Shown in pieces: positions 1 through 50,449 of a stretch of DNA of 64,000 nt. The notes under the pieces are model-generated. The model ran no database searches. It was not told where the DNA came from and saw nothing but the letters and a program-made list of their open reading frames with translations. Position 1 is the stretch's first letter; every line of letters begins with the position of its first letter. Position numbers and translations under genes: made by a program. The DNA is taken from positions 2,170,001-2,234,000 of the forward strand of contig JBLDXI010000001.1 in NCBI GenBank assembly GCA_047495785.1, given 5' to 3'. The DNA comes from Lepidodermella squamata. Taxonomy: Eukaryota; Animalia; Gastrotricha.

Positions 1-731
1 TCTGAGGTTCAGCCATAGATTTTCTCACTTTCAGTCGTGCAAATATTTCGACCCATTTTATTAATGCTTTCTTTCGATGCTACCTCCAAGAAAATAATCA
101 GAGGCTTTTAACTACTATCTCGAATGATGGTAAATGGTAATCAGCTTGCGAAATAGCAGCCACGTGTCTTACAGCCGGTGTGTGCGCGTGGCATGGCGCA
201 AAAAACAACCACACTAGTTTCGCGCGCGAAATCTGGCGACGACACATGACCCAACAGACAAAGCAGGTCGCGCGCCAACCTCTCCTATATAACCCGACGT
301 TAGGTTAACGCTAAACTTGTCGGCGGCAAAGATCTCAATTTTTCACTCTTTCTTTCATCGTTTTACATATATAGTAGCATGTTTTTTCGATAAAAAACTC
401 GATAAAAGCTTCGATAAAAAATCTTTTTATCAACGAAAGATCTCGCTCAGCTTTTTCACTGGAAGAAAAATCAACAAAAGTCTATAAAAAATTCTACCGA
501 CCAGCGTTCGATCGCACTGCCTTCGATTGGAACGGGCGATTTTTTACCGCCCCACTTCCATTCTGTAATTTATCCGAATTTTATACCACCGCCAGAAAAA
601 ATCGATCTCCGATTTGCCGACCGGTCCTTTTTAGGACCACAAGTTTTGCAAAAGTGTGCTATCTATCTAGCAAACCGATATTTTTTATTATGAAATAAAA
701 TTGAGTGTAAAAATATTTTTGAATAATTTTT

Positions 732-1070
732 TCAGCCGTTGAAAACATTTCCGATGACCTCGCCGACACGTTCCGCCTTGTGCGCAGCCAACGAGAGACA
801 AACGTCTTCATTATCGGCGTTGCACTCGGCCCACCTCGCCTTCCAGCACGTTTTCCAACAGCGGGTGACGCATTTTTCTCGGCAAATGATGTTGCAACCG
901 GTGTAGCAATCGCTGGTCAGCACGAGTGCGGCGTAAACAGCGGCGGCGATGAGCAGGGCGAGGATGAGGAGCATGATGAAAACGAGGCAACAGCACCGCG
1001 AACCGGCTCGCCGCGGCTTTTTCGGCTTCACGATTTGCTCGGTGCGATAGTACGTTGGCGGTGGAATCAT
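732..1070 (-). CDS. Small single-pass membrane protein with CxxxC-repeat Cys-rich C-terminal region
   Basis: 112-aa ORF: basic patch and CCC, a long hydrophobic stretch, then CYTGCNIICREKCVTRCWKTCWKARWAEC. Clear paralog at 2636-3049. Confidence 0.75.
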   Translation of the reverse strand: MIPPPTYYRTEQIVKPKKPRRAGSRCCCLVFIMLLILALLIAAAVYAALVLTSDCYTGCNIICREKCVTRCWKTCWKARWAECNADNEDVCLSLAAHKAERVGEVIGNVFNG

Positions 1071-2635
1071 CGGCTGTCGCGATGCGTCATGTCTAGTTAT
1101 TTTTTCAAATTTAAACTGTTATTCCAGAGAATTTTTCCGAAAATTTACTTGGCTGTGTATCCTTGACCACGGTAAATTTGATTAGACATCTTTAAAAAAC
1201 TATTGCTATATGGAAAAAATAAAATATTCAATTTGAAAATTAATCGATGCACCTTTTTGGTGGAATAAATTTCGGAAAATCGATTATGTGTTATTCAATA
1301 TTTCGTGCTATAATATCCCGTAAAATTCCTGTATTACGGGTTAGTTCAGTTTTGAAGCTGAAGAATGGTATCCAAAAGGTCTTTGAACCATGAATATTTC
1401 CAACTTTGATGTTCTTGATAAGAATTTGTACCTTCAATGCTGTTTTCCCGAATTTTAAATTTAAAAAAAATCCGGAAGTTTGGGATCTCGCCACTTCAAG
1501 TTTTGAAGCGTTCCAAGCTAATTTAAGTTGTTTCAAATGAAACCTAAAGCGCGCGTAAAATTATTTAATTTTTTTGCATGAAAATCCCACCTTAAAATAG
1601 ATTCATTATTGTGCATCGCAAGCTCAACTTTTCTCTGACTAAAAAATGGTCATGAAAATTGGTGTAATTACCTATAATTACCTCTCGGGTCGAGAAGTGC
1701 AAAATTTCAGTAACAAAATTGAAACGTAGAAACATGAGTTAGCTAATAGTTAATGGATATCAGAGTTCATAAAAGTCACGAACTCGCTTTAGATTCACTA
1801 CAGAAGTTTCACTATAAGGTGTTGTAAAACTCAGCGCTTGATACTAGGTTATAAAGATGAAAACGATCCAAGTTTGTACTTTTTGGCATTCCATTGACAC
1901 TGCGCATAGAGATGAGCATTACAGATTGAAAAGTTTAGGGCAAAGTAGTAAGTAGAAAAAATGATAATAAAAACATTATGAATACCTGTGAGTGAGTGTT
2001 CATGTGGGATCAAAATAATCCCGAGGAAAAAGTGTTCTTTACACGGCAAACAGACCGAAGAACCAAGTGCCACATAATATATTACGCCGGTCAAAAGGCG
2101 AAAGCTCCGTGCAAATTTCGTCAAACGAGTTTTTTCACATTACAAAAATAAAGAAATAAATACTGATATTTCAACGTTTTTGAGGAGTAAAAAGTATACA
2201 TATATAGCAGTAATAAAACAGCCAAGCGGTGTGTTTTTGGTAGCGCCGATGTACCTGCCTGCTGAAGTTGTGCCTTGTCGCGATTCTATTACATTGTCTG
2301 TATATGTGCCACTAATAATAATAATATTAATATTAATGCCTTTGATGCAAAAAAAACGGCGCAGTATGCGTCATGCCTTCTGGAAGCTGGCTAAAACACG
2401 CCACCGTGTGCACACCTGTGGTAGCAAACTGAAATACAACGACACTATGATTCATCCAAATCAGCTGAAAAATATGCTAAAAAAGATTAATGCGGATAAA
2501 AATTTCGAGAATCATCACCTTCCTAATATTTTATTATACACTGGATATTTAATATCTTCAGACATTAATATTTTTGATGAGTTCGAAAATGATGACTAAT
2601 TGACAAGGTAAAATGGCTAAAATATTTTTATTCCA

Positions 2636-3049
2636 CTAGCCTTCCAATGCTTCTCGCATTCCTGATATAACGTTGTCGATTTTATCTGCTGCAATGCCGA
2701 GACACACATTTTTACCTGTGGCGGGAAAAAAATATTAACAATTTTGTTATGATTGCGTTTTTTTACCATCATCTGGGCATTTAGCCCATCGAGCTTTCCA
2801 GCAGACTTGCCAGCAAGAGTTGACACAGCTTGAGGTGCAGATCTTTTGGCAGCCTCTGAAGCATGGCGAAGTGACAACTAGTACGCAGTAGATAACGGCG
2901 GCGAGGCTGAGCAAAGCGGCGGCGATCGAAAGCCCGATGCAGATAAAGTGCAGCGTACTGCCGAGCGGTTTTGCTACGCGCACGCCGCTGTCCCGAATTA
3001 GGTCAACTTCTTCGGGAATCCGATACCGCTCCATATTGGTATCGTACAT
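2636..3049 (-). CDS. Paralog of 732-1070 (TM + CxxxC repeats), two exons
   Basis: Contains CFRGCQKICTSSCVNSCWQVCWKARWAKC. A 51-nt GT-AG intron (2716-2766) splices to GKNVCLGIAADKIDNVISGMREALEG*, which aligns with the paralog tail EDVCLSLAAHKAERVGEVIGNVFNG. Confidence 0.75.
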
Positions 3050-33847: not shown

Positions 33848-34486
33848 TCAGACCTCGAGTTCTGGTGCGAAATGATTGTTTTCCACGTGTTTCTGCATCA
33901 GATTAGCGTTTCGAAACATTCGCTTACAATGAGGCCGGCTGCATTTGAGCAGTGGTCCAAATTTATGAATACGTCGATGTTCCATAGCTGAATTAGGATC
34001 GCCAAAGACCTTGAGACATATTGGGCATTTGACTTTGTGCTTTTCGTGCTTCCTCCTTTCATGCCTAATACAATCTGATTTAGTGAAAAACGCTTTTTCA
34101 CATTTCAGGCACGTAAATTTTCTTCGGCGGTAATGAACAATTTCAACATGATGGAAAAGCGATGATGACGAACCCAAAATTTTCCCGCACAAATTACAGA
34201 GATGTTCTTTCTTTCCATGGCGCATTCGAATATGACATTGAAGAGAATAACGAGACGGGATCAGCGATCCGCAAATATTACAAGGCAAAAGTGGACTAGG
34301 CCGATGGTAGCGATTCAAATGCTGTTGCAAGTAATACCGACATTGGATAACGATACTGCAGACAGGACATTGATGCAGATCATCCTTAGGGCCATGAGTC
34401 GTTTTGACGTGCCGCCCATAATTAGCCTGAGAACCGAAAATTTTGCCGCAATATTGGCACGTCCATTTTTTCTCAGATATAATCAT
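33848..34486 (-). CDS. Multi-C2H2 zinc finger protein (about 7 fingers, ends HFAPELEV)
   Basis: Finger-by-finger paralog of 32394-33053. Confidence 0.85.
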   Translation of the reverse strand: MIISEKKWTCQYCGKIFGSQANYGRHVKTTHGPKDDLHQCPVCSIVIQCRYYLQQHLNRYHRPSPLLPCNICGSLIPSRYSLQCHIRMRHGKKEHLCNLCGKILGSSSSLFHHVEIVHYRRRKFTCLKCEKAFFTKSDCIRHERRKHEKHKVKCPICLKVFGDPNSAMEHRRIHKFGPLLKCSRPHCKRMFRNANLMQKHVENNHFAPELEV

Positions 34487-34558: not shown

Positions 34559-35062
34559 TCAAGTCTCATGGGAAGTTTTCACGTGACGAGCCAGGCTTCG
34601 AGGATGAACATAAGCTCTGCCACAAATGTCACAAGCGTACTTCCCGGAATCAGCCTCATCATCAGAGTTTGAAGATTCGACGACTTTCCGATTTTTCGAC
34701 TCATTTCCGCCGGTTTTTCCTGATTTCTTCTCCGTTTTATCCGATGAAAAAAACGCGCTGTAGTCGGGCTGCTCGCCAGGTACGTAAAAGTACGCGCCGT
34801 CCGAAACAATGTCACTGTCGACAGCTTTTTCTTCATGGTTCGATGATGAATCTTCCGAAGTCGAGTTCCCATTTTCGATAGGTTCTGGGGGCGGAGGCGA
34901 TTCTTCTTCGTGGAATTCGGACGAAACAATGTCATGGATAAAGGTCACATTAGCCAGGCACAGCTTCAAATACGCGGCTGAGGGTTCGCGAACAGGCGCT
35001 TTCAGAAGTTCAACAAGGGAACTGGAAACATGCCTTACAAGTGCCAAGTCATTTTCATCCAT
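34559..35062 (-). CDS. Type-A N-terminal domain + 1 C2H2 finger
   Basis: LVELLKAPVREPSAAYLKLCLANVTFIHDIV, acidic linker, then YACDICGRAYVHPRSLARHVKTSH. Confidence 0.8.
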   Translation of the reverse strand: MDENDLALVRHVSSSLVELLKAPVREPSAAYLKLCLANVTFIHDIVSSEFHEEESPPPPEPIENGNSTSEDSSSNHEEKAVDSDIVSDGAYFYVPGEQPDYSAFFSSDKTEKKSGKTGGNESKNRKVVESSNSDDEADSGKYACDICGRAYVHPRSLARHVKTSHET

Positions 35063-35164
35063 TTTCAAATTTTGAAGTTAAAAATTCTAAAAAATTAAGA
35101 AATTAATTGGATTTATAGGCCATAAAATTGAACGAAAATGTGAAACTATAAAAAGTTCGGAAAG

Positions 35165-35665
35165 TCAAAAGGTTCCATGCGCATTTCTCACGTGGCGGTT
35201 CAGGTCGGAAGGGCCGCGGTACGCTTTTTCACACTGATCACAAGAAAACTGAGGCGCCCCGTGGGATCGAAGGTGCACTTTCAGGCTCTTTCCTCCGCGC
35301 GTTGGAACATAGCCACAAATTTCGCACGACTTCGGGCTGGGTTTCGGTTCCTCGAGATCGGGAGTTTCTTCTGTTTCTTCAACCTGCGGTTTATTTTGAT
35401 CTCCTACAATGTCGATTTCCACATCAGAGTAAGAATAGCGAGGCATTTTAGCCTGAGGTTGAGCTGCGATTTCTAGGACTCGAGGTTCGTCGGCTTCATC
35501 GGAATCTTTTGGGTGATAATTAGCTTCGACCAATTCGTGAATGAAGGTCACATTTGCGAGGCAAAGTTTCAAGAAAGCAGCCGAAGGTTCCCGAATTCGT
35601 GATTTTAAAAGTTTAACCAAAGCCCCTGCGGCGTTAGCTATCAAACTAGCTTCGATCGGATCCAT
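35165..35665 (-). CDS. Type-A N-terminal domain + 2 C2H2 fingers
   Basis: LVKLLKSRIREPSAAFLKLCLANVTFIHELV followed by two fingers. Confidence 0.8.
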   Translation of the reverse strand: MDPIEASLIANAAGALVKLLKSRIREPSAAFLKLCLANVTFIHELVEANYHPKDSDEADEPRVLEIAAQPQAKMPRYSYSDVEIDIVGDQNKPQVEETEETPDLEEPKPSPKSCEICGYVPTRGGKSLKVHLRSHGAPQFSCDQCEKAYRGPSDLNRHVRNAHGTF

Positions 35666-35765
35666 TATTCATTAATATAGAAACTATGTATTATCAATAA
35701 AAATCTCAAATCCTAAAACAGTTTTTCATTTCAGCTGAAAAATTGCGATTCCGTAAATTCTACGT

Positions 35766-36052
35766 TCAATGTTTTCGTTTCATGTGGGCGTAGAGATGGT
35801 CGGATCTCGTGTAGGACGACTCGCACAAGTTACATCTGAACATTTTCGTAGCAGAATGAACCGATATTCGATGACGATTCATCTTGGAGCTGTCGCAGAA
35901 ATTTTGCAGACATATCGGGCACGTTTTGGGTGATATCGTGGGAGCAGGTTCGAAGTTGTACGAACTTGAAGATGAGATTTGAATAGACTGATCTAACTTT
36001 CGCAACGCTTCAACTATTTTCGATGGAACATTCGCCTCGTCGCGGAAAACTT
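35766..36052 (-). CDS. Last exon of a type-B-like 2-finger C2H2 gene; 5' exons uncertain
   Basis: NVPSKIVEALRKLDQSIQI..SYNFEPAPTISPKTCPIC, matching the SYSF..PNTCPIC motif of neighbouring genes. Confidence 0.65.
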
Positions 36053-36542
36053 CTAAAAATAATCATAAAATAAATCTAATATCTAATAATTACTTAATAA
36101 GCTCAATTATTCCATATTTCAAGGTACGTTTCTGGAAATCTGAAAATCGACCATTTTTACGAATTTTCCAGGTATTTCCTGGCTGGTAACGAAATTTCGA
36201 AGCAGTTACAGTACCTAGTATCAAATTTTTCGCGTCCACACAAAGACTAGCTGCATTGGATGCCCCTGCGCCTGAAACAAAAACCATAACATTCAAGGCT
36301 AAGATTCATATTAAATTTACCGGAAGTCATGGATCGAAATTCTCGGACTAGTGTTATTAAAGACCCTAAAAAGTGTTGAACCAATCTGTTAGGAGAAATT
36401 CAATTAAAAAACTGAAATTGTGACTCGTGAAATCACTAGGCCACAGGAATACTCGAAAATATAACGAAAAATATCGCCCATATACAGTGTTTCCTGCATT
36501 AGGGCGTGAACTATTTTGTTTCACTGTGAGATTCAATGCTCC

Positions 36543-36857
36543 TCAGGGGCTGCTAGATTGCTGCTGCCTTTTCTGCGACTTTTTCGATTTCGTCGCTAGA
36601 ACCTGAAAGATGATGATGATTACTAAAAATGACCCTGGAACCTTGACCATCTATACCTGATCGCGAGGGAAATCATCCTGGTCCATTTCATGCGGCTCGA
36701 GACCAGATTCACTGGACGTGGCCAAATCTTGAATGAAAGTAGCATGGGCGAGGCACAAGTTCATGAAAGCCGCAGAATGCTTAGGAACGGGCGATTTCAG
36801 AAGGCCGATAAGTGCCTTAGAAACACTCAAAATAAGCTCGACATTCTCCTGATCCAT
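36543..36857 (-). CDS. Type-A domain gene apparently without a zinc finger
   Basis: LIGLLKSPVPKHSAAFMNLCLAHATFIQDL. A predicted splice (intron ~36603-36656) leads to VLATKSKKSQKRQQQSSSP*. Confidence 0.55.
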
Positions 36858-36964
36858 TGCGAAAAAATCCTCCTTAAAAATTAGCTAAATTCTGAAAAAA
36901 TCAAACAAGTAAGGTAGATTTCGAAATGTATTCGATATAATTTTTCACGAACTGAGCTTCCTCA

Positions 36965-37451
36965 CTAAGTCCCGTGTACATCAATTTCGTGGCGCCTAAG
37001 ATTATCAGCTCGGTTGTAAGATGAAGAGCACAAACTGCACTTGAAATGTTTCGAATTCGCCATGTGCATAGTCGTTTGATGCCGCAGCAGGTTATATTTC
37101 GAGTGGCAACTTACAAGACATATCGGACAGGTATTCGGCTCCAAATTAGGCCCAGCAGCGAATGAATAAGGTTCTGCTACTGCCGGTATAACATTCGAAT
37201 TTCCGATCATTTTTTGAATTTCCAACACCCTGCCGAGAGACTTCAACATTTCATTCTTTACTAGTTGCGGCAGAACTTGGCCTATATCAAATAAAATAAT
37301 TTAAAACCGGTCGGAAATTTCGCAAAACCCACTTGAAATTTGCTGCCCGATTTTTAAACACAGCTCTTCCGCTTCGATTAGTAATGCACCTGTATCTTTC
37401 GAGCTATAACTTTCAAAATTGGCTGGAAATTGCCGAGTTACCGTGATTCAT
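36965..37451 (-). CDS. Type-B N-terminal domain + 2 C2H2 fingers, three exons
   Basis: MNH|GALLIEAEELCLKIGQQIS|..LPQLVKNEMLKSLGRVLEIQKMI..PNTCPIC. Confidence 0.7.
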
Positions 37452-37513
37452 TCAATCGACTAGACCGGTTAAGTGACGAAAAATCAATTATCCCTAAAAC
37501 CGATATCTTTCGA

Positions 37514-37977
37514 TTAATATTCATCTTTAATCGCCTTCAAGCTCCCATGAACGCCATGGACATTTCGCTCGTGACGCATCACAGAGTCTTTACGGGTGAA
37601 ACTTGCTGAACACGAGTTGCATTTATAATTTTTCGACCTAGCGGCGTGAACAGTCTCTTGATGCCGCCCCATCGTCGATTTGTCTTTGAAGGCTACCAAG
37701 CAAATCGGGCAAGTATTCGGCGCAAGGTTGGGCCCAGAATCGAATGAGTACGATGTGCTGGCTGATTTGTTCGAATTCGAAATTTTAAGATATACCAGGC
37801 ACAAATTGTCGATTTCTGAAATAACAGCAGCTTTCTCGGCAGGGGAAATAGTCTTGCAATCTAAGGACAATTATTTCGACGGATTTGTTCCTTCTAGACT
37901 GAATTACCTTCCAACTTCTGAATGACTCGCCGATAGACCTTGTCAGCCTCATTCAGCAATTGCTCCGAAGTCGACAT
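37514..37977 (-). CDS. Type-B-like N-terminal domain + 2 C2H2 fingers, two exons
   Basis: MSTSEQLLNEADKVYRRVIQKLE|DCKTISPAEKAAVISEIDNLC..PNTCPIC. Confidence 0.7.
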
Positions 37978-38030
37978 AATTTACGGAAACTAAGCTTGAA
38001 AAATTACAGCAAACATATTTTCCAAGAAAT

Positions 38031-38466
38031 TCAATTTTTTATCAAATTATCAGCCGGGTGTTTTTCGAATTTGTGAGCTTCGAATTCATCGAACCGCGAG
38101 AAAGAAGTGGCACAAGTCGAGCACTCAAATTGCATCGTAAGGTTGTCATTATGAAACTTTGCAGCATGCTGATGTAAGCCTGACTCGCTGCGGAATTTTC
38201 TCCCACAAATCGGACAAATCTGGAAATAAACACGTCTCGTCGCCGATTTAGTTTTTAGCATGGTTAATATTTCTGAAATTCTTTCAATGCAGGCTAGAGC
38301 TCTGATGGCAGATTCTGGTAGTTGGGCTGCATTCGCATCGTAACAGATAGCTGGAAAAATCCGACTGATTAAAAACTTCAAAGGACCGATTCATACCATA
38401 AATCTGGGCGCTGGTGAGCTTACAATGAAAGTAAGCTTCTTTTCTCAATTTGGCTGAAAATTGCAT
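38031..38466 (-). CDS. Type-B domain + 2 C2H2 fingers; start uncertain
   Basis: AKLRKEAYFHCKLTSAQIY|AICYDANAAQLPESAIRALACIERISEIL. Confidence 0.7.
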
Positions 38467-38588
38467 GTCAGAGCATTACTTAGTTGAATCCAACAAAAAT
38501 AAAATACAAACCAGATTCCATACAGAAGTATATCAGTGACTAGTTAACAAGATGCATCCTAAAAAATGGCGAAATTTGATCTTAAGAT

Positions 38589-39087
38589 TCATTCAGGCTT
38601 GGGCAATCCGTCATTTCCTGGTCTATCATGAGACAAAGCGTAGTGATCTTTCAGGTCATATTTTCTGGCGTAAGATCGTTGACAGATTGTGCAGATATAA
38701 CGGGGTCTAACAGAGTGGACTGCGAATTCATGCCGATGCAACATATTCTTGTTTGAGAAAGCTTTTCCACAAAGAGGGCAGATTGTTGCCGAGGCAGCTT
38801 CGCTTTCCGCAACTTTGGAAAAAGCCGTCATAATTTTCTTGATTTTTTCGATCGAGGCGATAGCCGACAGGCCGGATTCTGGGATATCCGATAAACGCAC
38901 ATCGATACAGATTGCTATTAAAAATAGAAGCCTGAACAGCAGCGAAAATAAGGAATAAATTGATACCATGAATTTGAGAATTGGCGACTTCGCAAAGAGC
39001 CCCAGCTTCTTTGATCAGCTTAGCTGAAATTCGAGAACATCTACCACAAATAATCTTCGATATCATATCACACCTACCTCTTCTCAT
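38589..39087 (-). CDS. Type-B domain + 2 C2H2 fingers, three exons
   Basis: MRR|AKLIKEAGALCEVANSQIH|AICIDVRLSDIPESGLSAIASIEKIKKIM. Confidence 0.75.
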
Positions 39088-39223
39088 TTATAAATGCAAA
39101 TTATGAAGATAAAAATGGTGGAGTCGGAAAATTCTAAGACAAGAAAAAATAAATTAAGGAATTTCGGCCGAAATAATTCGATTCCTGCTACCACATGATC
39201 AACTATTAAAAAAGCAGAATATC

Positions 39224-39465
39224 TTTTAGCGGAACCAAATCGGCACTTTGCGGGACCTAATTTTGGGTAATCGAAAGGTGGCTTTTTGAATATTTCTACG
39301 AAATTGAGGCAATGCATGAATTTTATAGGGAAAAATGCGTCTTTTACAGAATTTTACGCTGAACTTAATGATGATTTATTTCAAGTTGAGCTGATAAATC
39401 ATGATAAGTTTCAAAGCTCTAAAAATGAGGCCCATTAAAAATTCCAAAATTTGGTTCCGCTAAAA
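39224..39465. repeat. Degenerate inverted-repeat element, GCGGAACCAAAT family
   Basis: ttttagcggaaccaaat ... atttggttccgctaaaa. Confidence 0.5.
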
Positions 39466-39761
39466 ATAAGAAGACCCTTAAAAGTTAACCTTAAAAATCG
39501 TTTAACAAATTCTTCTAATTTACATTCTCTTTTCAAATCGATCGATTTTCGCACGGAATTACCATTTTGGTCTCATTTATTTCCAATGTCATGCGAATTA
39601 GGGACGATAAAATTGGAGTTTAGAAATTTAGACGGTACGAATCGTGCACGGAGAACGCAGATAATTTTTTATATCATAAAATATCTGATTTAACGTATTC
39701 AGTCATATACAACAATGTCGACCAAAACAACAGTTCTATCATCTGTTCATCAAGTGTCGAT

Positions 39762-40612
39762 TCAGTGTGCTTTCATATGCTTGCTCAGACTTTCCTTGCG
39801 GCTATAAACTTTGGGGCACAGTTTACATTCCCACTTGACATTTTCATGCTTTGCCAGCTCATGAGCTTTAGTGGTGGAACTCTAGGTGAAAGATTTGCCG
39901 CAAGTCAAGCACGGGAATCTCAAAGATTGATGCACTCGCTTGTCGTGTTGATTCAAGCTGACTCGATTTCCAAACTTTAACGGACATTTCATGCATTCGA
40001 CGTTTCTGCCATGAAGGACATTTACATGTCTCTTCCAGCCATCTAACGAGGTGTAGATTTTGGAGCAATATTCACACTGCTGCGAAATCGTGGGGCGATG
40101 ATTTTGGGACATGTGATAGTAAAGGTATCTTGAGCAACGTAATTTGATGTGACATACAGGGCATTCCTTTGAACCATCCTTGCCAACGTGAACTGATTCC
40201 ATATGAACCTTCAAAGCGCGCCTATCGAAGCATTCCAGACCGCACATGGCACATCGATGACCGTGAAAGCTGGAATTCTTTTCATGTGAAAACCGGCAGA
40301 TAAATTATAAGGAAAACATCTCAACTCACGGCAAAGCTTCTCATGGTAATGAAGTCTCCCTGGCGTCAAAAAAGTATTGGGACATAGGGCGCATTGGAAG
40401 ATGGGCGACTCGTTGTGACAATGCACGTGTTCTTGCAGATAGCTGACTGAACTCAACAGCTTAGCGCAAAATGGGCAGGTGCGGCTGTCAAGCGAGGCAT
40501 CCTCGTGTGAATATTTCTTCTTCCCTGAGACGCGAGAAATACGAAGCAAACGTATTTAACAATTTTCGAAAAAATTTCAATTACCAGGCCCCTTCGAGTC
40601 TTCCATGGCCAT
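39762..40612 (-). pseudogene. Multi-ZF gene (HRPTISQQCE family), probably disabled
   Basis: In-frame TAG at 39882-39884 where paralogs have TCG, and the intron-2 acceptor reads ttttcac instead of the ttttcag of paralogs (~40286). Confidence 0.7.
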
Positions 40613-40709
40613 TTTGCGAAAAAATTTCAGCTTCACTATATTATACTATAATGGGCAACTAGAAGAGTAATTAAAATCTACGCGAAATACTACCGTCATT
40701 TGGGTCATT

Positions 40710-41095
40710 GGGGCTATTCGGACGAATGTTCATGCAAACAGGAGAATGAGCATGGCTCAAAAACTACCCGGGCGTTGGCAATGAAATTTTGCACAGAGTT
40801 AGGTGAAAAGACGCCTACCCTAAAACACGCATACCCTACACACATACCCTAAAAATTTCATGGCCTGAGAGTAAGTGGTTGTGAAGATATGAGCTTACCT
40901 TTCAGGTGTTTCAGGTGTTTCAGTTTAACTCAGTTTAAGCACTGTTCTTCGTTGAATTACCTGGACCCGAAGAGAATTTTGCTAGACCTGCGCCCAATTT
41001 TTTCTGAATCTACATACGCTCGGGCACCCATGAAAATTGAAAACGTCCCGACCCGACTCATACTTTTTTCTAATTAATTGCGTCCGAATAGCCCC
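40710..41095. mobile_element. MITE with 15-bp TIR GGGGCTATTCGGACG
   Basis: ggggctattcggacg ... cgtccgaatagcccc; no clear TSD. Confidence 0.7.
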
Positions 41096-41113
41096 ATCAA
41101 CAAGTGAACTTGA

Positions 41114-41516
41114 GGGGCTATTCGGTCTGCCCTTTGAATATGCCAATGAACTACGCTGTTCAAACGTTCCTTGCTGATTAAAGCGGACTTCAATTTCATT
41201 TACATTTCAATTTTTGAAAAAGCTGGAAATGCTGGAAAAGACTAATTTACTGCGGTGTCACACGACATTGCCAATTGATTAAATACGACTATAATTGACA
41301 AATAATTCAACTAAAAATCAGTGCGATATATTGCTTAAATCCTTGTGCATAAAAATAATTCGAAAATTTTGCGGAAAAATTGTTCCGCGGCGTGGACTCG
41401 AACCCTCGTTTCGTACTTAGTTATGCTCTCTAGAAGCACATCCAAAGCCACTCGACCACTGAACACAACATATCAGTAATTTTTGAATTGAATATTTATG
41501 TATCATTAATAGCCCC
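41114..41516. mobile_element. Second GGGGCTATT...AATAGCCCC element, carrying a tRNA-like sequence
   Basis: Nine-bp terminal inverted match shared with 40710-41095, but an unrelated interior. Confidence 0.5.
41381..41466 (-). pseudogene. tRNA-like sequence (Leu/Ser type II), pseudo-tRNA or SINE head
   Basis: Minus strand has box A tggtcgagtgg, a gtgct-tctagag-agcat arm, a long variable region, box B ggttcgagtcc and a T5 run downstream. The acceptor stem pairs poorly. Confidence 0.6.
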
Positions 41517-41765
41517 ATCAGGATTCCAAAATTATGACCATCTGTGGTAATCCTGGTTCCATTGGAATCAGGACCTTATGAAACGTGTAAAAATGCAAAA
41601 AAAATCAGGAGGTAATTTTTTTCGCCGTCTGGATAGCCCCAACTGACGGTGCCAAAAAGGCTCTATTTGTAAATTTACTAATAATATCTCGCACGCAATC
41701 GGCTTAAAATCAGCGTATTCACTATTCACTATGCCCGACCTTTGCTGTGGCAAGAAAAGTGCAAG

Positions 41766-42082
41766 CAGAGTTGTCCTCGGGTCTGAAATTTTGGACCCGA
41801 TCCGAACCGGACTTCGGAATCCAAAACCCGGATCCGATCCGATCCGATCCGAGGTCAAACCAGGCGCTTTTTCTGGGGGTTTTCCTGGTCGGATAAGTTA
41901 CTTATTCAGGAAATTTTCACCGAAACCTCGCGGAAATAGGGTTGTCTTCAATTTTCCTGGTGATAAGTGACATTTAAGACATAGAATTTTACGGTAATGT
42001 GAGTTTTCAGCTGTGCCTTGCTTACACGTACTCAATGTCGGGTCGACGGGGAAGACCCGGATCCGACCCGGGGACAACTCTG
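41766..42082. mobile_element. hAT-type MITE
   Basis: TIRs cagagttgtcctcgggtc and gacccggggacaactctg. Eight-bp TSD agtgcaag at 41758-41765 and 42083-42090. Subterminal (gatcc)n repeats. Confidence 0.9.
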
Positions 42083-42368
42083 AGTGCAAGACAAGTACAA
42101 CGCTAACGTTGAGGTTGACGGCTTATGATAGGCTCCTCATCTCCAAAAATGCGATCCTAGTTCTCATTGACGTGAGAATTCCAGACCAGGGTCCGGAATA
42201 TTATTATAGAGTGAAATTCAGTATTAATTGGAGGCATTGACAAAATCGTGCACGAGGAGAAGAGTGAGGCTTCAACATAATTTGTTTTATCAGATAATAT
42301 TATATACTCAGCCATATAACAATTCCGACCGGGAAAACAAGGCTATCATCAGTTCAACAAGTATCGAT

Positions 42369-43228
42369 TCAGTGTGCTTTCATAATATGCTTGCTCAGAC
42401 TTCCATTGTGGTTATAAACTTTAGGGCACAGTGTACATTTCCATTTGACATTTTCGTGATTGACCAGCTCGTGAACTTTAGCTGCATAACTCGAGGAGAA
42501 CGATTTTTCGCAATTCAAGCACGGAAATCTCAAAGATTGATGCACTAGCCTGTCGTGGTGGTTCAAATTGGATCGATTTCGGTAAGTTGCAGAACATTTC
42601 ACGCATTCGAGGCCCTGCCCATGCACGGCTATGGCATGACTCTTCAAGCTGATCAACGAGATGAATATTTTATAGCAATTTTCACATTGCTGCGAAATCG
42701 TGGGGCGGTGACATCGCGTCATGTGATAGATAAGGTATCTTGAGCAACTCATTTTCTTGTGGCAGACAGGGCAGTCTCTCGAATCGTCCTTGCCGGCGTG
42801 AACTGACTTGAGATGCACAGCCAAAGTGTGCTTATCGACGAATTCCAGAACGCACATGGAACAGAAATATTCAGATTGATAACCTTGAATCCTGAAAGCC
42901 TTTATACCTGAAAATAGGCAGATAAATCATACGGCAAAAGATCTCAACTCACGGCAACGCTTCTCGTGGCAATCAAGTCTTCTTTGCGTGACAAAGGTTT
43001 TGGGACATAGGGCGCATTTGAAGCTGGTCGATTCGTCGTGCATATGTGCGTGTTCTCGCAGATAGTGGAATGAACTCAACACCTTAGCGCAAATTGGGCA
43101 CGTGCGGCTGTCCTGGTGTGATTTCTTCTTCTTCTCTAGGGCTCAAAAAACAAGAAGCATACGTGTATGAAAGTTCCGAATAGTTTCCAATTACCAGGTT
43201 TCCTCGATTTAGAGCCTTCCACGGCCAT
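42369..43228 (-). CDS. Multi-C2H2 ZF protein (HRPTISQQCE family, about 8 fingers, three exons)
   Basis: MAVEGSKSRKP first exon, DSRTCPIC exon and a six-finger terminal exon. Confidence 0.8.
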
Positions 43229-43765
43229 GTTGAGATACACGTTCAGCTTCGTCACTATATTTTACTATAAAGGGCGACTAAAGGAGTAATTAAAATCTAT
43301 AGAAGCTACGCGAAATACCACCAAAAGACTCGTTGTAATTTATTACGATTACGATTACGATTCCGACAGAGGTATTATCAATTTATTAATAATCAGCGTA
43401 AATTCACTATGAACGACCTTTGTTGTAGCCAGACAGAAGTATAACACTAAACACTGACGTTGAGCTGGACGGCTTATTATTAGGTACCAAGCTTGCACAT
43501 CCGTTAGACCTGTCCCTTCTATCATCTCCGATAATGCGATATTAGTTCTCATCTACATGAGAATTCCAGACCCGGGTCTGGAATTTTATCGCAGGGTGTA
43601 ATTCAGTATTAATTGGATGCGGTGTCCAAATCGCGCACTGAGATAACACAGTGAGGCTTCAACATGATTTGTAATATCAGGTAATATCTATCCCGCCAGT
43701 TAACGATGTCGACCGAGAAAACAAGGCTAACATCAGTTCAACAATTTTCGATTCAGGGAGCTTGC

Positions 43766-44490
43766 TCATGCTTTCACGTGTGATTTCACGTGCTTGCGCA
43801 GACGTTCGGGGCAGTTATAAAATTCAGGGCACAATTTACATTTCCACTTGACATTGTCGTGCATCGCTAGCTCATGGACTTTAGCTTTGTGACTCGAGAA
43901 GAACGATTTGTCGCAATTCAAGCACGAAAAGCTCACTGATTAATGCACTCGCCTGTCGTGGTGTTTCAAGGAGGATCGATCTCGAAAAGTTGCAGAACAT
44001 TTCGCGCATCTGTGTTCTCGTTCATGCACGATTCTCATGTGTCTCTTCCAGCTTTCCAACGAGGTGAAAACTTTACAACAATATTCACATTGCTGCGAAA
44101 CAATGGGACGATGATTTATGGACAAGTGAAGGGTAAGGTATCTTGAGCAACGAAGTGTTAGGTGACATACAGGGCATTCTTTTAAATCTTCCTTGCCGGC
44201 GTGAACTGATTAGGTGAACTGATAAGGGACACAAACATTCAGATCGATACCCGTGAATCCAGAAAGCCTTTATACCTAAAAACGGGTAGATGAAACATAG
44301 GCCAAAGTATCTCAACTTACGACAACGCCTCTAATGGTCTTCAAATCTCCTTTTTGTAGGAAGTGTCTTCGGACATAAATCGCATTTGAAGCTAGGCGAT
44401 TATTCGTCTTGCATATGTCGAAGATAGATGCAGAAATGTATGCCTTGGCACAAATTGGACAAACGTGGATATCAAGCGCGAGAACCTGAA
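43766..44490 (-). pseudogene. Multi-ZF pseudogene
   Basis: Homologous to neighbours, with a premature TAA at ~43940, a deletion near 44220 and a degenerate 5' part. Confidence 0.7.
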
Positions 44491-44835
44491 TTATTCGTTG
44501 CTAATACCAAGAAATCATCTTGATATTTGAAGCATCTTCTTTAGATACCAGCATTATTCAAGACAATGGCAGCCAGTTGAAAGATGAACTACGAATTTAG
44601 AAACCAATTATCCACTCTAAATACAAATTTCGTTTAAAATTTAAAATAACTCCAATTTGTCGATGAGTCAGTGAAATGGAAAAGGCAAATAACAGAAAAA
44701 GCAACGAGCACACAAGTATTTTCACCGCAGTTCACGTTGTTTCTTCATGAAAAACTATGGGCCGTAGATTAGACTGCGTAGACTGGGAGGTTGAAAATGC
44801 ACAATTAATATCGAGTTTCTGTACATTTTGACCTA

Positions 44836-45294
44836 CCGTAAATACCGAATTACTAGGCATCACCTAAATTTAAGGCAGGACCGGAATTGAGGGCACAGGT
44901 CCGAGGTCAATTGAAATAATATAAGGCAGAACCGAAATATAAGGCACGTGCCTCTTATTCCGGCTTGAGTGAGCGTCAGCTGTGCAAATGGAAGAAGCTT
45001 AATCTCGCGCACTTGATAGAGCGTAAGTAGTACTTAATCCACCTGTGAGGAATTTAATCCCTTGTTTACACACAGTCGCTAGCAGCAAAGGAGGTAAAGA
45101 ACGCAGGCGCCTCCCAGGTGCGGGTCGATGAGGTTGAAATTATAACTGGTGATGATGATGAATGAATTTCTCGTGCTCGGTAAAAATAAATATAAGGCAG
45201 ACCCGAAATAAAAGGCAGACCCGTTTTACAAGGCAGGACTTTTGGGGCATTTGAAATTATTATAAGGCACTCTCTTATAATTCGGTATTTACGG
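44836..45294. mobile_element. Tc2/pogo-like MITE with TA TSD
   Basis: TA-ccgtaaataccgaatta ... taattcggtatttacgg-TA, with many internal taaggca motifs. Confidence 0.85.
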
Positions 45295-45575
45295 TATTCC
45301 CTTCACTCCAGCTTTAAAATTGAGAACATTGAAAATGGTGAATGGCTGCTTTAATTATTTTGATTTTCTGCGTGCCTTTCATTGCGAAGTGTGATCTTCA
45401 TGACACAATTGAACGAGGCAATTGATTGCCATGTTTTTTCAAATGTTGCCACAAACCTGATAACTAGTGAACATTCCCGGACACAATCTACATTCCCAAC
45501 GGAAATTTTCTGACAGATGTAAGTCTATCATTAGTTCTATCAGACAGTTCTATCATTAGTTCAACAAGGTTCGAT

Positions 45576-46440
45576 TCAGTGTGCTTTCAAATGCTTGCTC
45601 AGACTCTCGGAGAAGTTATAAACTCTGGGGCACAACGTGCATTTCCACTTGACATTGTCATGCTTCGCCAGCTCGTGCTTCCTAGCGTATTGGCTGGAGG
45701 AAAATGACTTGTTGCATGTCAAACACGCATGTCTCACATTTTTATGCACGTGACTGTCGTGGGCATTCAAGCTCCTTCGACTTCGGAAAGTCAAAGAGCA
45801 TTTCAAGCATTCGTTGTCTCCGCGATGGAAGTCTCTTACATGACATTTCCAGCTTAACAATGAAGTGAAGAGTTTAGAGCAATACTCACACTGCTGCGAA
45901 ATCGTGGGGCGATGACATTGAGACAAGTGAAGAGTAAGGTATCTTGAACAACGTAGTTTGATGCTGCAAACAGGGCATTCTTTTGTATCTTCCTTGCCAG
46001 CGTGAACTGATTTCAGGTGTCTGGTCCAACCGCTCTTGGTGAAACACTCCAGTGAGCACATGGGGCACAAGTATTCAGTTCGGTAACCGTGAATCTTCAA
46101 AGCACTTTGACCTGGCAATAGGCAGATAAATCAAGCTGCAAAACATCACAGGTAACTCACAGATCCTCTCATGGCTACGAAGTCTCCATGACGTATAAAA
46201 TGTTTTGGGACATTGGGCACATTTGAAGCTGGGCGATTCGCCGTGCAAATATACGTGTTCTCGCAGAAAGTAGATTGAATTCAACACCTTATAGCAAAAT
46301 GGGCACGTGCGGCTGTCAAGCGAGGCATCCTCGTGTGAATATTTCTTCTTTCCTGAGACGCAAAAAATACGAAGCAAACGTATTTAACAAGTTTCGAACA
46401 ATTTTCAATTACCAGGCTTCTTCGAGTCTTGCGCGGCCAT
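45576..46440 (-). CDS. Multi-C2H2 ZF protein (HRPTISQQCE family)
   Basis: Same three-exon layout as 42369-43228. Confidence 0.8.
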
Positions 46441-46490
46441 TTTGAGATACACGTTCAGCTTCACTATATATTACTCTACAATGTGCAACT

Positions 46491-47022
46491 CGTTAGCGTT
46501 TCGGTATAACTCTCCATTTGACGGTAACTCCGCCTCGCCATTGTTCCCTAGTTGCGGTAAACAATTTACCGTAAACGGCACTACCTCGACGCTGAAGCAT
46601 GCAAATACTCGCGCGCGGTAAAATTAATTTTTCTGCGGTAAGTCGCGTCTTGGCTCGCGTACTTACAATAGGGCTTGTTACGCAACCGCCGCAGAGCCTG
46701 AGTATAACAGATAAATTGCCTGTTCGTTTAAGGTGTTACAAAATGACGCGTTACCATGGTGTGTGCGCGGGATTCCTCCATGGCTCATATTCAGCATGCT
46801 TCTTGCGCTCGCTGTGTCAGCCTTACAGTAAGTGGAAAGACAAAGGCTTACGTTATATAGTAACTGCCGCAAGTGCTATCCACGGTAAAACTAACGCCGC
46901 GTGCGGTAAAAATTTACAAACGCGGCGGCGTTAGTTTACCGCAAAAGCATTAAGGTGACCTTGTTTGCGGGCCGCGGTAAAATAATTACCGTCAAATGGA
47001 GAGTTATACCGAAACGCTAGCG
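46491..47022. mobile_element. MITE with ~37-bp TIRs and 4-bp TSD AACT (Sola-like by TSD length)
   Basis: cgttagcgtttcggtataactctccatttgacggtaa ... ttaccgtcaaatggagagttataccgaaacgctagcg, with aact on both sides. The paralogous empty site gcaactagaagag is at ~40655-40667. Confidence 0.9.
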
Positions 47023-47251
47023 AACTAGAAGAGTAATTAAAATCGATAGAAGCTCGGCACATGTACAGGGTCCGGAATTTTATCCGGGCGGAAAGGAATT
47101 CAGTATTACTTGGAGGCAGAGACCAAATCGTGCACGGAAAGAACACAGTGAGGTTTCAACATAATTTGTTTTATCAGGTAATGTCTGTTCAGCCAAATAT
47201 AACAATGTCGACCGAGAAAACAAGGTTATCATTAGTTCAACAAGTTTCGAT

Positions 47252-48124
47252 TCAGTGTGCTTTCATATGCTTGCGCAGACTTCCATGGTAGTTATAAACT
47301 TTAGGGCACAATTTACATCTCCACTTGACATTTTCGTGATTCGCCAGCTCGTGAACTTTAGCCGCACAACTCGAGGAGAACGATTTTTCGCAAATCAAGC
47401 ACGGAATTCTCACAGGTTGGTGCACTACCCTGTCGTGTCGGTTCAAGCTGATTAGATTTCGAAATTTTAACGAACATTTCACGCATTCGTGGTCCTGCCC
47501 ATGCACGGCTATAGCATGCCTCTTCAAGGTAATCAACGAGGTGAAGATTTTATTAGAGCAATTTTCACACTGCTGCGAAATCGTGGGGCGATGATATTTG
47601 GACATGTGATAGCTAAGGTATCTTGCGCAACGAAATTTCATGTGGCATACAGGGCATTCTCTCAGATCTTCCTTGCCGGCGTGAACTGATTTCAAATGCC
47701 GAGTCCAAGCGCTCTTATCGAAGCATCCCAGACCGCACATGGGACACAAATATTCAGATTGATACCCTTGAATCCTGAGAGCCTTTATACCTGAAAACAG
47801 GCAGATAAATCATACCGCAAAATATCTCAACTTACGACAACGCTTCTCGTGGTATGCAAGTCTCCATTTCGTGAGAAGTGTCTTCGGACATGAATCGCAT
47901 TCGAAGCTGGGGGATTCATCGTGCAAATGTGCATGTTGTTGCAGCATTTTGACCGTATCAAACACCTTGACGCAAAGTGTGCACGTGCGGCTGTCAAGCG
48001 AGGCATCCTTGTGGGAATTTTCCTTCTTCCCTGAGACTCGAAAAAAGCGAAGCAAACGTATTTTGAAAGTAACGAATAATTTTCAATTACCAGGCTTCAC
48101 TAACTTTGAGCCTTCCGCGGCCAT
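47252..48124 (-). CDS. Multi-C2H2 ZF protein (HRPTISQQCE family)
   Basis: Same three-exon layout as its paralogs; reading frames intact. Confidence 0.8.
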
Positions 48125-48708
48125 TTGAAGATAGAAGTTTAGCTTCCCCCTATTATATTATAAAATGCGTCTAAAAGAATAATTAAAATTGATAGAATAT
48201 TCGACACTCAGCCAAAAAAGAATTATCTTTTCACTTTATCTACTCGTAATCAAAGTTAAACGTCCGTTTTCACTATGCCAAAATTTTGTTGAAACCCGAC
48301 AACTACACCACTAATTAACGTTGAGATAGACGGTTTAGTATAGGTTCCTAGCCTCGCTGTGTTTACGTGCCTGTCTGCTTTCGATAAATCATCCATCACC
48401 CCGCCCACTTGTGTGCACAGCGCACTGCCGCCGGCAAACGCATATAATCTCGCGACCCCGCGTCATTGATATCTTTACTTATTTCGTCTCCCCTGTTTAT
48501 GTGATATCAATGAACAATAAATATTTGAATTTAGAATTTAGAATTTAACTTCAATTTCACCCCAGAAATTCATCCGGCGACGGAAGAGACATTTCTGAAG
48601 TTAACGAAGTTCGGTCGCGATTTGAACTATCGATTTACGGTCACCCCTTTGAAAGGTCACAGAAAAATACCCAGTAGAGCGTTATTACCATATTGATGAA
48701 TTGTTTTA

Positions 48709-49179
48709 TTATGGCTTGAGCGTTTCTTGACACGCATGGATCGAAGCATAGTGACAGTTTAACTGATGTTTTGTCGTAAATGACTGAAGACAGAGATCGC
48801 AAACAACACGGGGCCTTTCAGGATTGTGAATCGTACTTTTGTGATGCCGCAAATATTTCATGTGTTTGAAAGTTTTTCCACACTCGGGGCAATCAGCTTT
48901 AGGGGACTTGAAGGTCGATATTATTTCACTGATTCTAGCAATTGAAGCTAGAGCTGAGACAGCCGATTCGGGAATGTCCAATAGACTCACATCTCTACAC
49001 GTTGCTAGAATAAAAATAAAATTCGAACCAATTTTACAATAAAATAATAATTCAAGAAGTACCATGAATATGCGCGCCCGCTGCCTTGGTAAGACTTTCA
49101 GCTTCTTTGATAAGTCTGGCTGAAATAACCGAATTTATTTAGGGCCATTTCACGCATTTCAATTACTTCTCTCATTCAT
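48709..49179 (-). CDS. Type-B domain + 2 C2H2 fingers
   Basis: MNER|TRLIKEAESLTKAAGAHIH|ATCRDVSLLDIPESAVSALASIARISEII. Confidence 0.75.
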
Positions 49180-49328
49180 TTTACCAACTTCTGGGACAAT
49201 TAAATATTCGAAAATTTATAACTAAAAATTTAACGAAGTATAGCGATTGAATTTATGTGTTTTATAGGGCGTTACTTTTAACAACTGCAACAATAAAATG
49301 AATCATAGTCAATTCGTTGTCTTCATAC

Positions 49329-49829
49329 TCAGTGTTTCTTTAGCAGATGTAATTTCAAAGTATCGGATCTCGTGTAAACCGCTGGGCAGAGATCGCACGG
49401 GTAGTTCGGCCTCACGGAAGCATGCGAGGAATGATGGCGCATCATATTGTTCTTAGATGTGAAATTCATGAGGCATACCGGACAGGTATTAGGCGGAAGG
49501 TCTTTCTTAGCCTCGAAGCTGTACGAACTGACCATGGGTGGCAAATCTTTCTTCAGTGATGACAAAATTTCGGAAATTCGGTCAAACGACGCGACTGTTT
49601 GAAGAATTGCATCAGGAACTTGGGTGTGTTGGAAGAAGAACGAAGCTGAAATAAATGAAGTCACTACAAATTAAAATTAGTTCGATTCGAAAATTCATCA
49701 CGAGACCAGCGAGCTTGGCTTTAGAATCGGCGCAGATCACTTCACCTTCTTCGATCAGTTTTGCTATCATTTTGATCGATAATATATTTGAAACCACAGC
49801 AGTCAACAAATTAACTAACCCTTGTCCAT
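49329..49829 (-). CDS. Type-B domain + 2 C2H2 fingers
   Basis: MDK|AKLIEEGEVICADSKAKLA|..QVPDAILQTVASFDRISEIL..SYSFEAKKDLPPNTCPVC. Confidence 0.75.
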
Positions 49830-49916
49830 AAATTCAAAAAAACTAAAATTCAATTCAAATAAAATTTCGAAATTTATCGAAAAATCAGAAAACAAATTCA
49901 CGAAGAAATACTCATT

Positions 49917-50449
49917 TCAGATCGTTTCCTCAATTTTTACATAATCAGGCACCAGAGGATCGTCCCCTATATATGGTCCGTTCGGTGGATGGATGCGCTG
50001 ATGAGTTTTCAGTTTATCAATGCGGGTGTAGGAAGCATGACACGTTTCGCAAGTGAACTTGGGCTTCACAGCCGCGTGACAGACTTCAACGTGGCGACGT
50101 AAATTTCTCGTGTCTTTGACAGTTCTCATGCATTCAGGGCAACTGACTCGAGGTTTCGGACACTCATCACGCAGTTTTCGCGACTTGAGAATTGAAACGA
50201 TTTCTATTATTCGGTCTAGCGAAATCAGGGCGGTAATGACAGAGTCAGGTAGGCTATCCAGTTTCAGCTGGAAGAAAGCAGCTACAAGAATTTTAAACGA
50301 TCGGGGAATCTTGGGGGAAACGGTCATCTCACCATGGGTTTCTGTTTTGACGACATCACTAAGTTTACCCAATTCATCCACCAATTGTGCTGAACAGGAC
50401 AAACAACCATTAAATTATGACCCCAAAAATATGTCAAACCTGTTTGCAT
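49917..50449 (-). CDS. Type-B domain + 2 C2H2 fingers
   Basis: MQT|AQLVDELGKLSDVVKTETH|AAFFQLKLDSLPDSVITALISLDRIIEIV. Confidence 0.75.

Follow-up and report, generated by a model that had tools for sequence, protein, structure and literature searches.

A tiny tandem family of two-finger zinc-finger genes with an unrecognized N-terminal region in the gastrotrich Lepidodermella squamata

Introduction

Animal lineages have repeatedly fitted N-terminal modules of their own to C2H2 zinc fingers (KRAB, SCAN, ZAD, and FiNZ), and each of these modules defines the workings of one fast-evolving transcription-factor family. SCAN is an all-helical dimerization domain, KRAB binds TRIM28 and recruits a co-repressor, and the BTB/POZ domain spans about 120 residues. 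KRAB and SCAN (about 75 and 84 residues, respectively) lie on small exons of their own before a single finger exon, and both head long finger arrays. ZAD domains, found N-terminally on C2H2 proteins of arthropods encoded in lineage-specific tandem clusters, are documented homodimerizers (PMC7913770). FiNZ, from cyprinid fish, is a short, lineage-specific N-terminal module without similarity to known domains, encoded on its own exon, with the fingers on a separate exon further downstream, in C2H2 genes arranged in tandem clusters; it is 28 residues long and glutamate-rich, precedes long finger arrays, and reaches about 700 copies in zebrafish (PMC10547256).

Here we describe eight C2H2 genes of Lepidodermella squamata, hereafter type B (B1 to B8), within a window of 64,000 nt, i.e., the whole stretch of DNA analyzed (contig JBLDXI010000001.1, positions 2,170,001 to 2,234,000). 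The N-terminal region of type B shares with FiNZ its shortness, lineage restriction, position upstream of a separate finger exon, tandem clustering, and lack of similarity to known domains, while the published description of FiNZ sets the two apart: the type-B region comprises about 55–65 hydrophobic-helical residues on two or three exons, ahead of two fingers, in eight copies. Its N-terminal position and lineage-specific tandem clustering recall ZAD, whose homodimerization corresponds to the role proposed for type B below, yet ZAD is a zinc-binding fold of about 75–90 residues with four conserved cysteines in two pairs, a set that type B lacks. As with KRAB and SCAN, small exons precede a single finger exon, but length and sequence differ. 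Type B is unusual in two respects: its proteins have just two fingers, and its domain, being divided among micro-exons, would escape ORF-based or automated annotation. Type B would add a small case from a poorly studied phylum, of practical value as a caution for annotators and as a compact candidate for a dimerization unit; with eight copies in one genome, known at the level of sequence, it has limited wider significance at present.

Results and discussion

Eight old tandem paralogues

All eight two-finger genes listed in an earlier note on this DNA were recovered at the ends given there, from the stop codon of B1 (35766) to the start codon of B8 (50449; Table 1). Their interleaving with type-A genes (34559, 35165, 36651), which carry a predicted helical hairpin of another kind, and with multi-finger genes (39882–48055) was likewise seen as noted. 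The predicted models are 117–143 codons long (n = 8), and intergenic gaps are only 53–149 nt. Each predicted protein, small and of nuclear type, consists of a short helix 1, a linker of ~10 residues, a hydrophobic helix 2 of ~26 residues, and two classical C2H2 fingers (PF00096, PF13894). Two fingers were found in each of the eight genes by regular expression (C-x2-C-x12-H-x3-5-H), and all five main exons scanned with Pfam pass the PF00096 curated cut-off. The base-contact residues of the fingers vary among copies.

Table 1 Predicted type-B gene models and leave-one-out HMM results
Gene	Span	Strand	Exons	Codons	Subgroup	Predicted introns	Leave-one-out E	Remarks
All eight	35766-39087 and 48709-50449	minus						Models built from DNA
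B1	35766..36330	minus	36330-36321, 36271-36215, 36052-35766	117	II	49 and 162 nt, phase 1	0.35	
B2	36965..37451	minus	Helix-1 exon 37422-37333 (90 nt), main exon 37281-36965		II	Intron 2, 51 nt, phase 1	0.0024	
B3	37514..37977	minus	37977-37908, 37860-37514	138	II	47 nt, phase 1	0.004	Helix-1 exon carries start codon
B4	38031..38521	minus	38521-38512, 38453-38397, 38350-38031	128	I	58 and 46 nt, phase 1	7e-7	
B5	38589..39087	minus	39087-39078, 39023-38967, 38914-38589	130	I	54 and 52 nt, phase 1	5e-4 (helix 2), 1e-3 (helix 1)	
B6	48709..49179	minus	49179-49167, 49119-49063, 49004-48709	121	I	47 and 58 nt, phase 1	1e-7 (helix 2), 4e-3 (helix 1)	
B7	49329..49770	minus	49770-49707, 49645-49329	126	II	61 nt, phase 1	3e-9	Helix-1 exon carries start codon
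B8	49917..50449	minus	50449-50440, 50389-50333, 50281-49917	143	I	50 and 51 nt, phase 1	1e-5	

A genome-wide profile search returned these eight copies only. For 28 of 28 type-B gene pairs, pN was lower than pS, which indicates that the N-terminal region evolves as coding sequence; pS was saturated (0.52–0.89), hence we consider the family old. Overall, type B is a genuine, tiny, and lineage-restricted gene family of eight old tandem paralogues.

Micro-exons and phase-1 introns

Five of the eight genes are predicted to open with a start micro-exon of 10–13 nt, which comprises ATG plus two codons and a single base in B1, B4, B5, and B8, with a third codon added in B6. In the same five genes, the predicted helix-1 exon measures exactly 57 nt and is flanked by GT..AG introns, with intron 1 spanning 46–58 nt and the phase-1 intron 2 also 46–58 nt, except for 162 nt in B1. 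All predicted type-B introns are in phase 1 with GT..AG borders, and most are 46–61 nt long. Since a comparable start micro-exon lies upstream of only 3.2% of the YAG sites in the window, the probability of five or more cases in six is 1.8e-7, and the layout is not due to chance. The micro-exon first exons and phase-1 introns reported in the earlier note are thus present in the gene models, the joins being predicted from DNA. The intron models of B2 and B4 are further supported by a divergent copy of the locus (run X2): both 1-nt indels seen there within type-B genes, i.e., insertions at 37292 (B2 intron 2) and 38354 (B4 intron 2), fall inside predicted introns. The predicted intron 2 of B8 is in frame and contains no stop codon.

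Other observations would fit gene models that are partly wrong, with transcripts starting in or just before the main exon (e.g., by trans-splicing in an operon-like array), the micro-exon and 57-nt exon absent from the mRNA, and the module reduced to helix 2. The short intergenic gaps resemble those of operons, and helix 1 is weakly conserved in half of the genes (see below). The putative start micro-exon of B2 (37451-37442) has the ATG-plus-7-nt-plus-GT pattern, but its acceptor is only 19 nt away, so that it is not spliceable as modeled. In addition, the patchy, short read contigs of X1, a data set whose RNA status is a guess, listed no joints at type-B introns; depth in these data was highest at B4. 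We nevertheless consider this reading unlikely: an exact length of 57 nt, an intact frame, and phase 1 at both boundaries are kept in five old paralogues whose flanking intron lengths differ, the micro-exon pattern is very improbable by chance, and most main exons have no suitably placed start codon ahead of helix 2. A search of the genome with a putative bdelloid rotifer spliced-leader sequence found no match, a result that carries no weight because the query is unreliable.

Helix motifs and subgroups

We next considered how far the helices are shared, searching 10,638 six-frame segments with leave-one-out HMMs. Every left-out gene was the first non-training match, through its helix-2 region, with E values from 3e-9 to 4e-3, except for B1, the weakest member, which still ranked first at E = 0.35. 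The earlier note had described two motifs shared by about eight genes; both vary in strength among them. The helix-2 motif ([IL]P[ED]S...AL.S[IL].RI.EI) is clear in B4–B8 and weak in B1–B3. The helix-1 motif (A.LI.EA..LC......IH) is complete only in B5, which matches both motifs in full, near-complete in B6, B4, B7, and B2, and faint in B8, B1, and B3. When helix 1 alone was evaluated in a position-restricted test, four of the eight genes were significant (B5 and B6, p < 0.001; B2, p = 0.003; B7, p = 0.017), and B4, B8, B1, and B3 were not. The subgroup singled out in the earlier note, which carries SY[SN]F...P[NK]TCP[IV]C ahead of the fingers, was recovered as B1, B2, B3, and B7. The tree places B7 with B1–B3, and this gene bridges subgroups I and II.

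Absence of known relatives

Searches of the exons against Pfam matched zinc fingers only, and the helix-2 pieces matched nothing at E values up to 10. For ZAD (PF07776) specifically, the N-terminal pieces had no Pfam match at E up to 10 and hold 0–2 cysteines, with no paired CxxC. The KRAB A-box profile (PF01352) was not matched by type-B sequences, nor were there Pfam matches to SCAN (PF02023) or BTB/POZ (PF00651), the type-B region being only about 55–65 residues long. A profile search of PDB sequences gave nothing below E = 0.08; its top match, FliS (E = 0.085), was judged not credible. The ESM Atlas yielded no relative of the N-terminal region, and an exhaustive search of 1.84 billion protein representatives with the helix-2 profile found no convincing relative. 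The sole match among these representatives (P0001, E = 1.3e-4) is a repetitive 170-residue ORF without fingers, which we judged spurious. A word-based protein search with B5 exon 3 matched nothing, and a metagenome scan with B6 exon 3 as a single-protein query found no relative. As no convincing relative was found in the databases searched, i.e., Pfam, PDB sequences, the ESM Atlas, the protein representatives, and the metagenome scan, the description of type B as an unrecognized zinc-finger-associated module stands.

Predicted structure and possible roles

Helix 1 is predicted to be short and amphipathic, with about 16–18 residues, and an [IL]P[ED]S helix cap closes the linker. The second helix (about 26 residues) is very hydrophobic over more than one face and is followed by a short spacer before the fingers. 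Because of this distribution, a hydrophobic-moment test on single helices was mostly not significant. For the unspliced ORF of B8, AlphaFold2 predicted a helix at residues 3–18 (pLDDT about 55), a helix at residues 53–78 (pLDDT about 86), and two confident fingers, with no packing between the helices (pTM 0.32). A complex prediction for two copies of B8 residues 5–85, again from the unspliced ORF, scored 0.00, an outcome that weighs neither for nor against self-association.

On composition and by analogy, self-association or binding to a shared partner appears the most likely role. A two-helix unit of this size, hydrophobic on several faces, would be unlikely to be stable alone, which would favor either a dimer of the four-helix-bundle type or binding to a shared partner. 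Two-finger proteins would read only about 6 bp each, and dimers could reach longer sites; such pairing would resemble the role of ZAD, SCAN, or BTB on other zinc-finger proteins. We therefore propose, with about even confidence, that the type-B N-terminus may be a module for self-association or partner binding that resembles ZAD, SCAN, KRAB, and FiNZ in role and not in sequence.

Within the core group, the N-terminal region is conserved at least as well as the fingers, with identities of 43 vs 27% for B4/B6, 48 vs 39% for B5/B6, and 37 vs 31% for B4/B5. A higher conservation of the N-terminus than of the fingers is the pattern expected when paralogues keep one common partner, and would also suit effector recruitment, in which the helices all bind a single cofactor (a co-repressor or co-activator), as KRAB does with TRIM28 and as has been proposed for FiNZ, and form no pairs among themselves. 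Small N-terminal exon(s) before one finger exon, as in KRAB and FiNZ genes (PMC10547256), point the same way. We regard recruitment of this kind as possible though rather unlikely, since the family comprises just eight two-finger genes, in contrast to the extensive multi-finger arrays of the KRAB and FiNZ families, and since most conserved positions hold hydrophobic residues of core type and do not form a charged surface patch.

The self-association or partner-binding reading also has to be weighed against there being no autonomous domain at all, the N-terminal likeness then being residual paralogue identity in a flexible leader, e.g., a localization or turnover signal. The model does not pack the two helices with confidence, and the searches found no relatives outside this tiny family, both of which would be consistent with such a leader. 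We consider it very improbable, given that helix 2 retains its hydrophobic register and P[ED]S cap despite saturated synonymous sites and is confidently modeled in B8.

Relationship to type A

Types A and B had been proposed in the earlier note as distant homologues or heterodimer partners. Both are predicted to form a short helix and then a longer one, both contain an "LC......IH"-like string, and their genes are interleaved, all of which could fit a common origin. The HMM–HMM comparison (hhalign) did not bear this out, with probabilities of 0.7% and 0.2% by exon and 0.1% with the B exons joined, and column-shuffle tests were not significant (p = 0.17 and 0.36). A circular permutation, in which B helix 1 corresponds to A helix 2 and B helix 2 to A helix 1, was equally unsupported by column-shuffle tests and hhalign. 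Intron layouts are also unlike: the type-A hairpin lies within a single exon along with the rest of its gene, whereas the type-B helices are split over exons. The likeness in helix order is too generic to count as homology, and we deem it extremely improbable that type B descends from the type-A hairpin by divergence or circular permutation and that the two heterodimerize.

A broader scenario, which we consider quite improbable, would make types A and B undescribed helical-hairpin pairing modules that let one- and two-finger proteins, encoded in operon-like arrays, form longer DNA readers as combinatorial homo- or heterodimers. If true, the modular zinc-finger repressor logic familiar from KRAB, ZAD, and FiNZ would have been invented independently here, in a compact form. 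The type-A hairpin genes (34559, 35165, 36651, 55950, 56444, 62527) share their cluster and strand with type B; they are likewise small, with one or two fingers and a predicted two-helix N-terminus, and type A likewise has only eight copies genome-wide.

Predicted gene models of type-B two-finger proteins

Type-B genes, which encode an N-terminal helix 1, a linker and a helix 2 ahead of two C2H2 fingers, were proposed in an earlier note from sequence inspection. The ORF list and three-frame translations confirmed eight minus-strand two-finger ORFs (B1–B8), with stops at 35766, 36965, 37514, 38031, 38589, 48709, 49329 and 49917, and reading the upstream DNA, with exons assembled by script, yielded predicted complete reading frames of 117–143 codons. 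The last (main) exon encodes, in order, linker, helix 2, spacer and both fingers. All predicted introns are GT..AG, in phase 1 and 46–61 nt long, except one of 162 nt in B1; introns here measure ~50 nt, have GT..AG ends and use (t)ttcag-type acceptors. The pattern of micro-exon starts and phase-1 introns anticipated in that note was present in these models, with a start micro-exon in five genes. Since 3.2% of the window's YAG sites have a start micro-exon of such form 40–65 nt upstream, the chance probability of the pattern in five of six was 1.8e-7.

Predicted exon features of type-B genes and position of the finger-less type-A gene
Gene or feature	Position	Strand	Description
B1, B4, B5, B8		minus	first exon 10 nt: ATG, two codons and one base
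B6		minus	first exon 13 nt
B1, B4, B5, B6, B8		minus	second exon exactly 57 nt, coding helix 1
B3, B7		minus	start codon within helix-1 exon
B2	37423-37451	minus	ATG + 7 nt + GT as in family; 19 nt to helix-1 acceptor
B8 intron 2	50282-50332	minus	51 nt, in frame, without stop codon
Finger-less type-A gene	36540-36857	minus	hairpin exon to GT donor after ...RDQ

B2 is the exception: its donor-to-acceptor spacing is too short for a believable intron, so that the model does not fix its 5' end. Its reading frame is intact further downstream, and the locus looks like the result of a deletion in intron 1, which may have disabled the normal start. If intron 2 of B8 were retained, 17 residues would be added precisely between helix 1 and helix 2 and the protein would be unbroken. 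Joined exons were used only for translation, MAFFT alignment, pN/pS, the tree and one hhalign run; otherwise exons were analyzed singly.

Sequencing run X1, only guessed to be RNA, covers the stretch unevenly, with its greatest depth over B4 and over two type-A genes, i.e., neighboring small finger genes with a different N-terminal hairpin. As there was no run with an RNA record, and no joint at B-gene introns among the X1 joints listed, the exon joins stay predictions. Beyond 38112 (+), which lies within the B4 finger-coding exon on the antisense strand, one X1 contig reads into 22 A residues absent from the genome; either an antisense transcript with a poly(A) tail or an artefact of assembly could account for this.

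A conserved N-terminal region without known relatives

We evaluated the N-terminal region through leave-one-out HMM tests, with 10,638 six-frame segments from the window and 190 kb of flanking cluster as the search space. For helix 2, the excluded gene was the top non-training match in all eight tests (E-values: B7 3e-9, B6 1e-7, B4 7e-7, B8 1e-5, with weaker members B5 5e-4, B2 2e-3, B3 4e-3 and B1 0.35), and across the genome the profile matched exactly B1–B8 and nothing further. Helix 1 alone (an 18-residue exon) was far weaker, reaching significance only for B5 and B6 against the same background. Limiting the search to the 250 nt that precede the main exon added B2 (p 0.003) and B7 (p 0.017) and gave no significant match for B4, B8, B1 and B3, where position, exon size and phase suggest helix-1 homology.

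A maximum-likelihood tree separated B4/B5/B6/B8 from B7+(B1,B2,B3), the latter corresponding to the SY[SN]F...P[NK]TCP[IV]C subgroup. All 28 pairs of B genes displayed pN < pS, and pS was saturated (0.52–0.89), indicating that the duplications are old. Within the core group, conservation of the N-terminal region was no lower than that of the fingers (identities of 43 vs 27% for B4/B6, 48 vs 39% for B5/B6 and 37 vs 31% for B4/B5), and the base-contact positions of the fingers vary among copies. Run X2, probably the DNA data behind the assembly, includes a copy diverged by ~7% that has single-base insertions at 37292 (B2) and 38354 (B4), both within predicted second introns; the remaining X2 indels of the 5.9-kb stretch all lie between genes.

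Searches with the B exons returned only zinc-finger families in Pfam, and the helix-2 pieces had no Pfam match at E up to 10. We found no credible match among PDB sequences and none in the ESM Atlas, in a word-based search of 5.8 billion clusters or in a metagenome scan, nor any description of such a module in rotifers in the literature. When 1.84 billion representatives were searched exhaustively with a profile, the sole match was a repetitive ORF, which we judged unconvincing. An unrecognised zinc-finger-associated module encoded by micro-exons, as originally suggested, is supported in silico, with no known-domain match in Pfam or PDB sequences.

AlphaFold2 structure prediction was run on the unspliced B8 ORF, in which the in-frame, stop-free second intron leaves a contiguous reference, and the remaining main exons served as rows of the alignment. 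Helix 2 (53–78, pLDDT ~86) and both fingers were confident, helix 1 (3–18) was of low confidence, and no confident helix packing was obtained (pTM 0.32).

Overall, these analyses show that B1–B8 are a real, old, lineage-restricted family of eight two-finger proteins, whose N-terminal helical region is conserved, split by phase-1 introns and without match to described domains. A two-helix unit of ~45 residues is unlikely to be stable by itself, and two fingers read only ~6 bp. Given this, and a helix 2 hydrophobic on more than one face, the most economical mechanism would be that the helices mediate either self-association or contact with a common partner. Such a role would parallel those of ZAD, a documented homodimeriser (PMC7913770), SCAN, KRAB and FiNZ (PMC10547256), none of which matches type B in sequence; type B is a variation on the well-known theme of N-terminal modules on zinc-finger proteins.

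Relationship between type A and type B

The genome has eight type-A copies, of which the window contains six and the remaining two lie near 1.95 Mb; the type-A N-terminus is predicted to fold as a two-helix hairpin (helices 3–20 and 26–49, pLDDT 80). The two types had been proposed as distant homologues or heterodimer partners in a putative repressor system. The HMM-HMM comparison gave hhalign probabilities of 0.7%, 0.2% and 0.1%, and column-shuffle tests p-values of 0.17 and 0.36; the sole aligned feature, an "LC......IH" string, was not significant. We found no evidence for homology, collinear or permuted, by either method. As to partners, a B homodimer would be likelier than an A–B heterodimer.

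In the finger-less type-A gene, a 57-nt intron is followed by a short exon encoding a basic NLS-like tail and stop; its product could be a competitor or regulator of type-A proteins. A substitution cluster at 34796–34847, in the coding part of type-A gene 34559–35068, occurs in both X1 and X2 and is a second allele or close copy.

Genomic setting

Within the assembly (151 contigs, 121 Mb), the B genes sit in a big same-strand C2H2 cluster, at ~1.91–2.30 Mb of contig JBLDXI010000001.1 as judged from finger matches. A putative spliced-leader pattern of bdelloid rotifers had no match in the genome. Along the minus strand, 39087–34559 holds B5, B4, B3, B2, an A-only gene, B1 and two type-A genes, and a multi-finger gene at 34486 is next, totaling nine small same-strand zinc-finger genes. 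Stop-to-start gaps in the 34559–39087 row are mostly 53–107 nt among those measured, and B8, B7 and B6 (48709–50449, minus) are spaced by 146–149 nt. This tight packing would fit an operon-like arrangement, compatible with co-transcription or trans-splicing.

A 242-bp element (39224–39465) with perfect 17-nt terminal inverted repeats separates B5 from the following multi-finger gene. Over this element, X2 summed contig depth rises from ~80 to 3000–3700 with many variant joints, so that the element is probably a high-copy MITE-like repeat.
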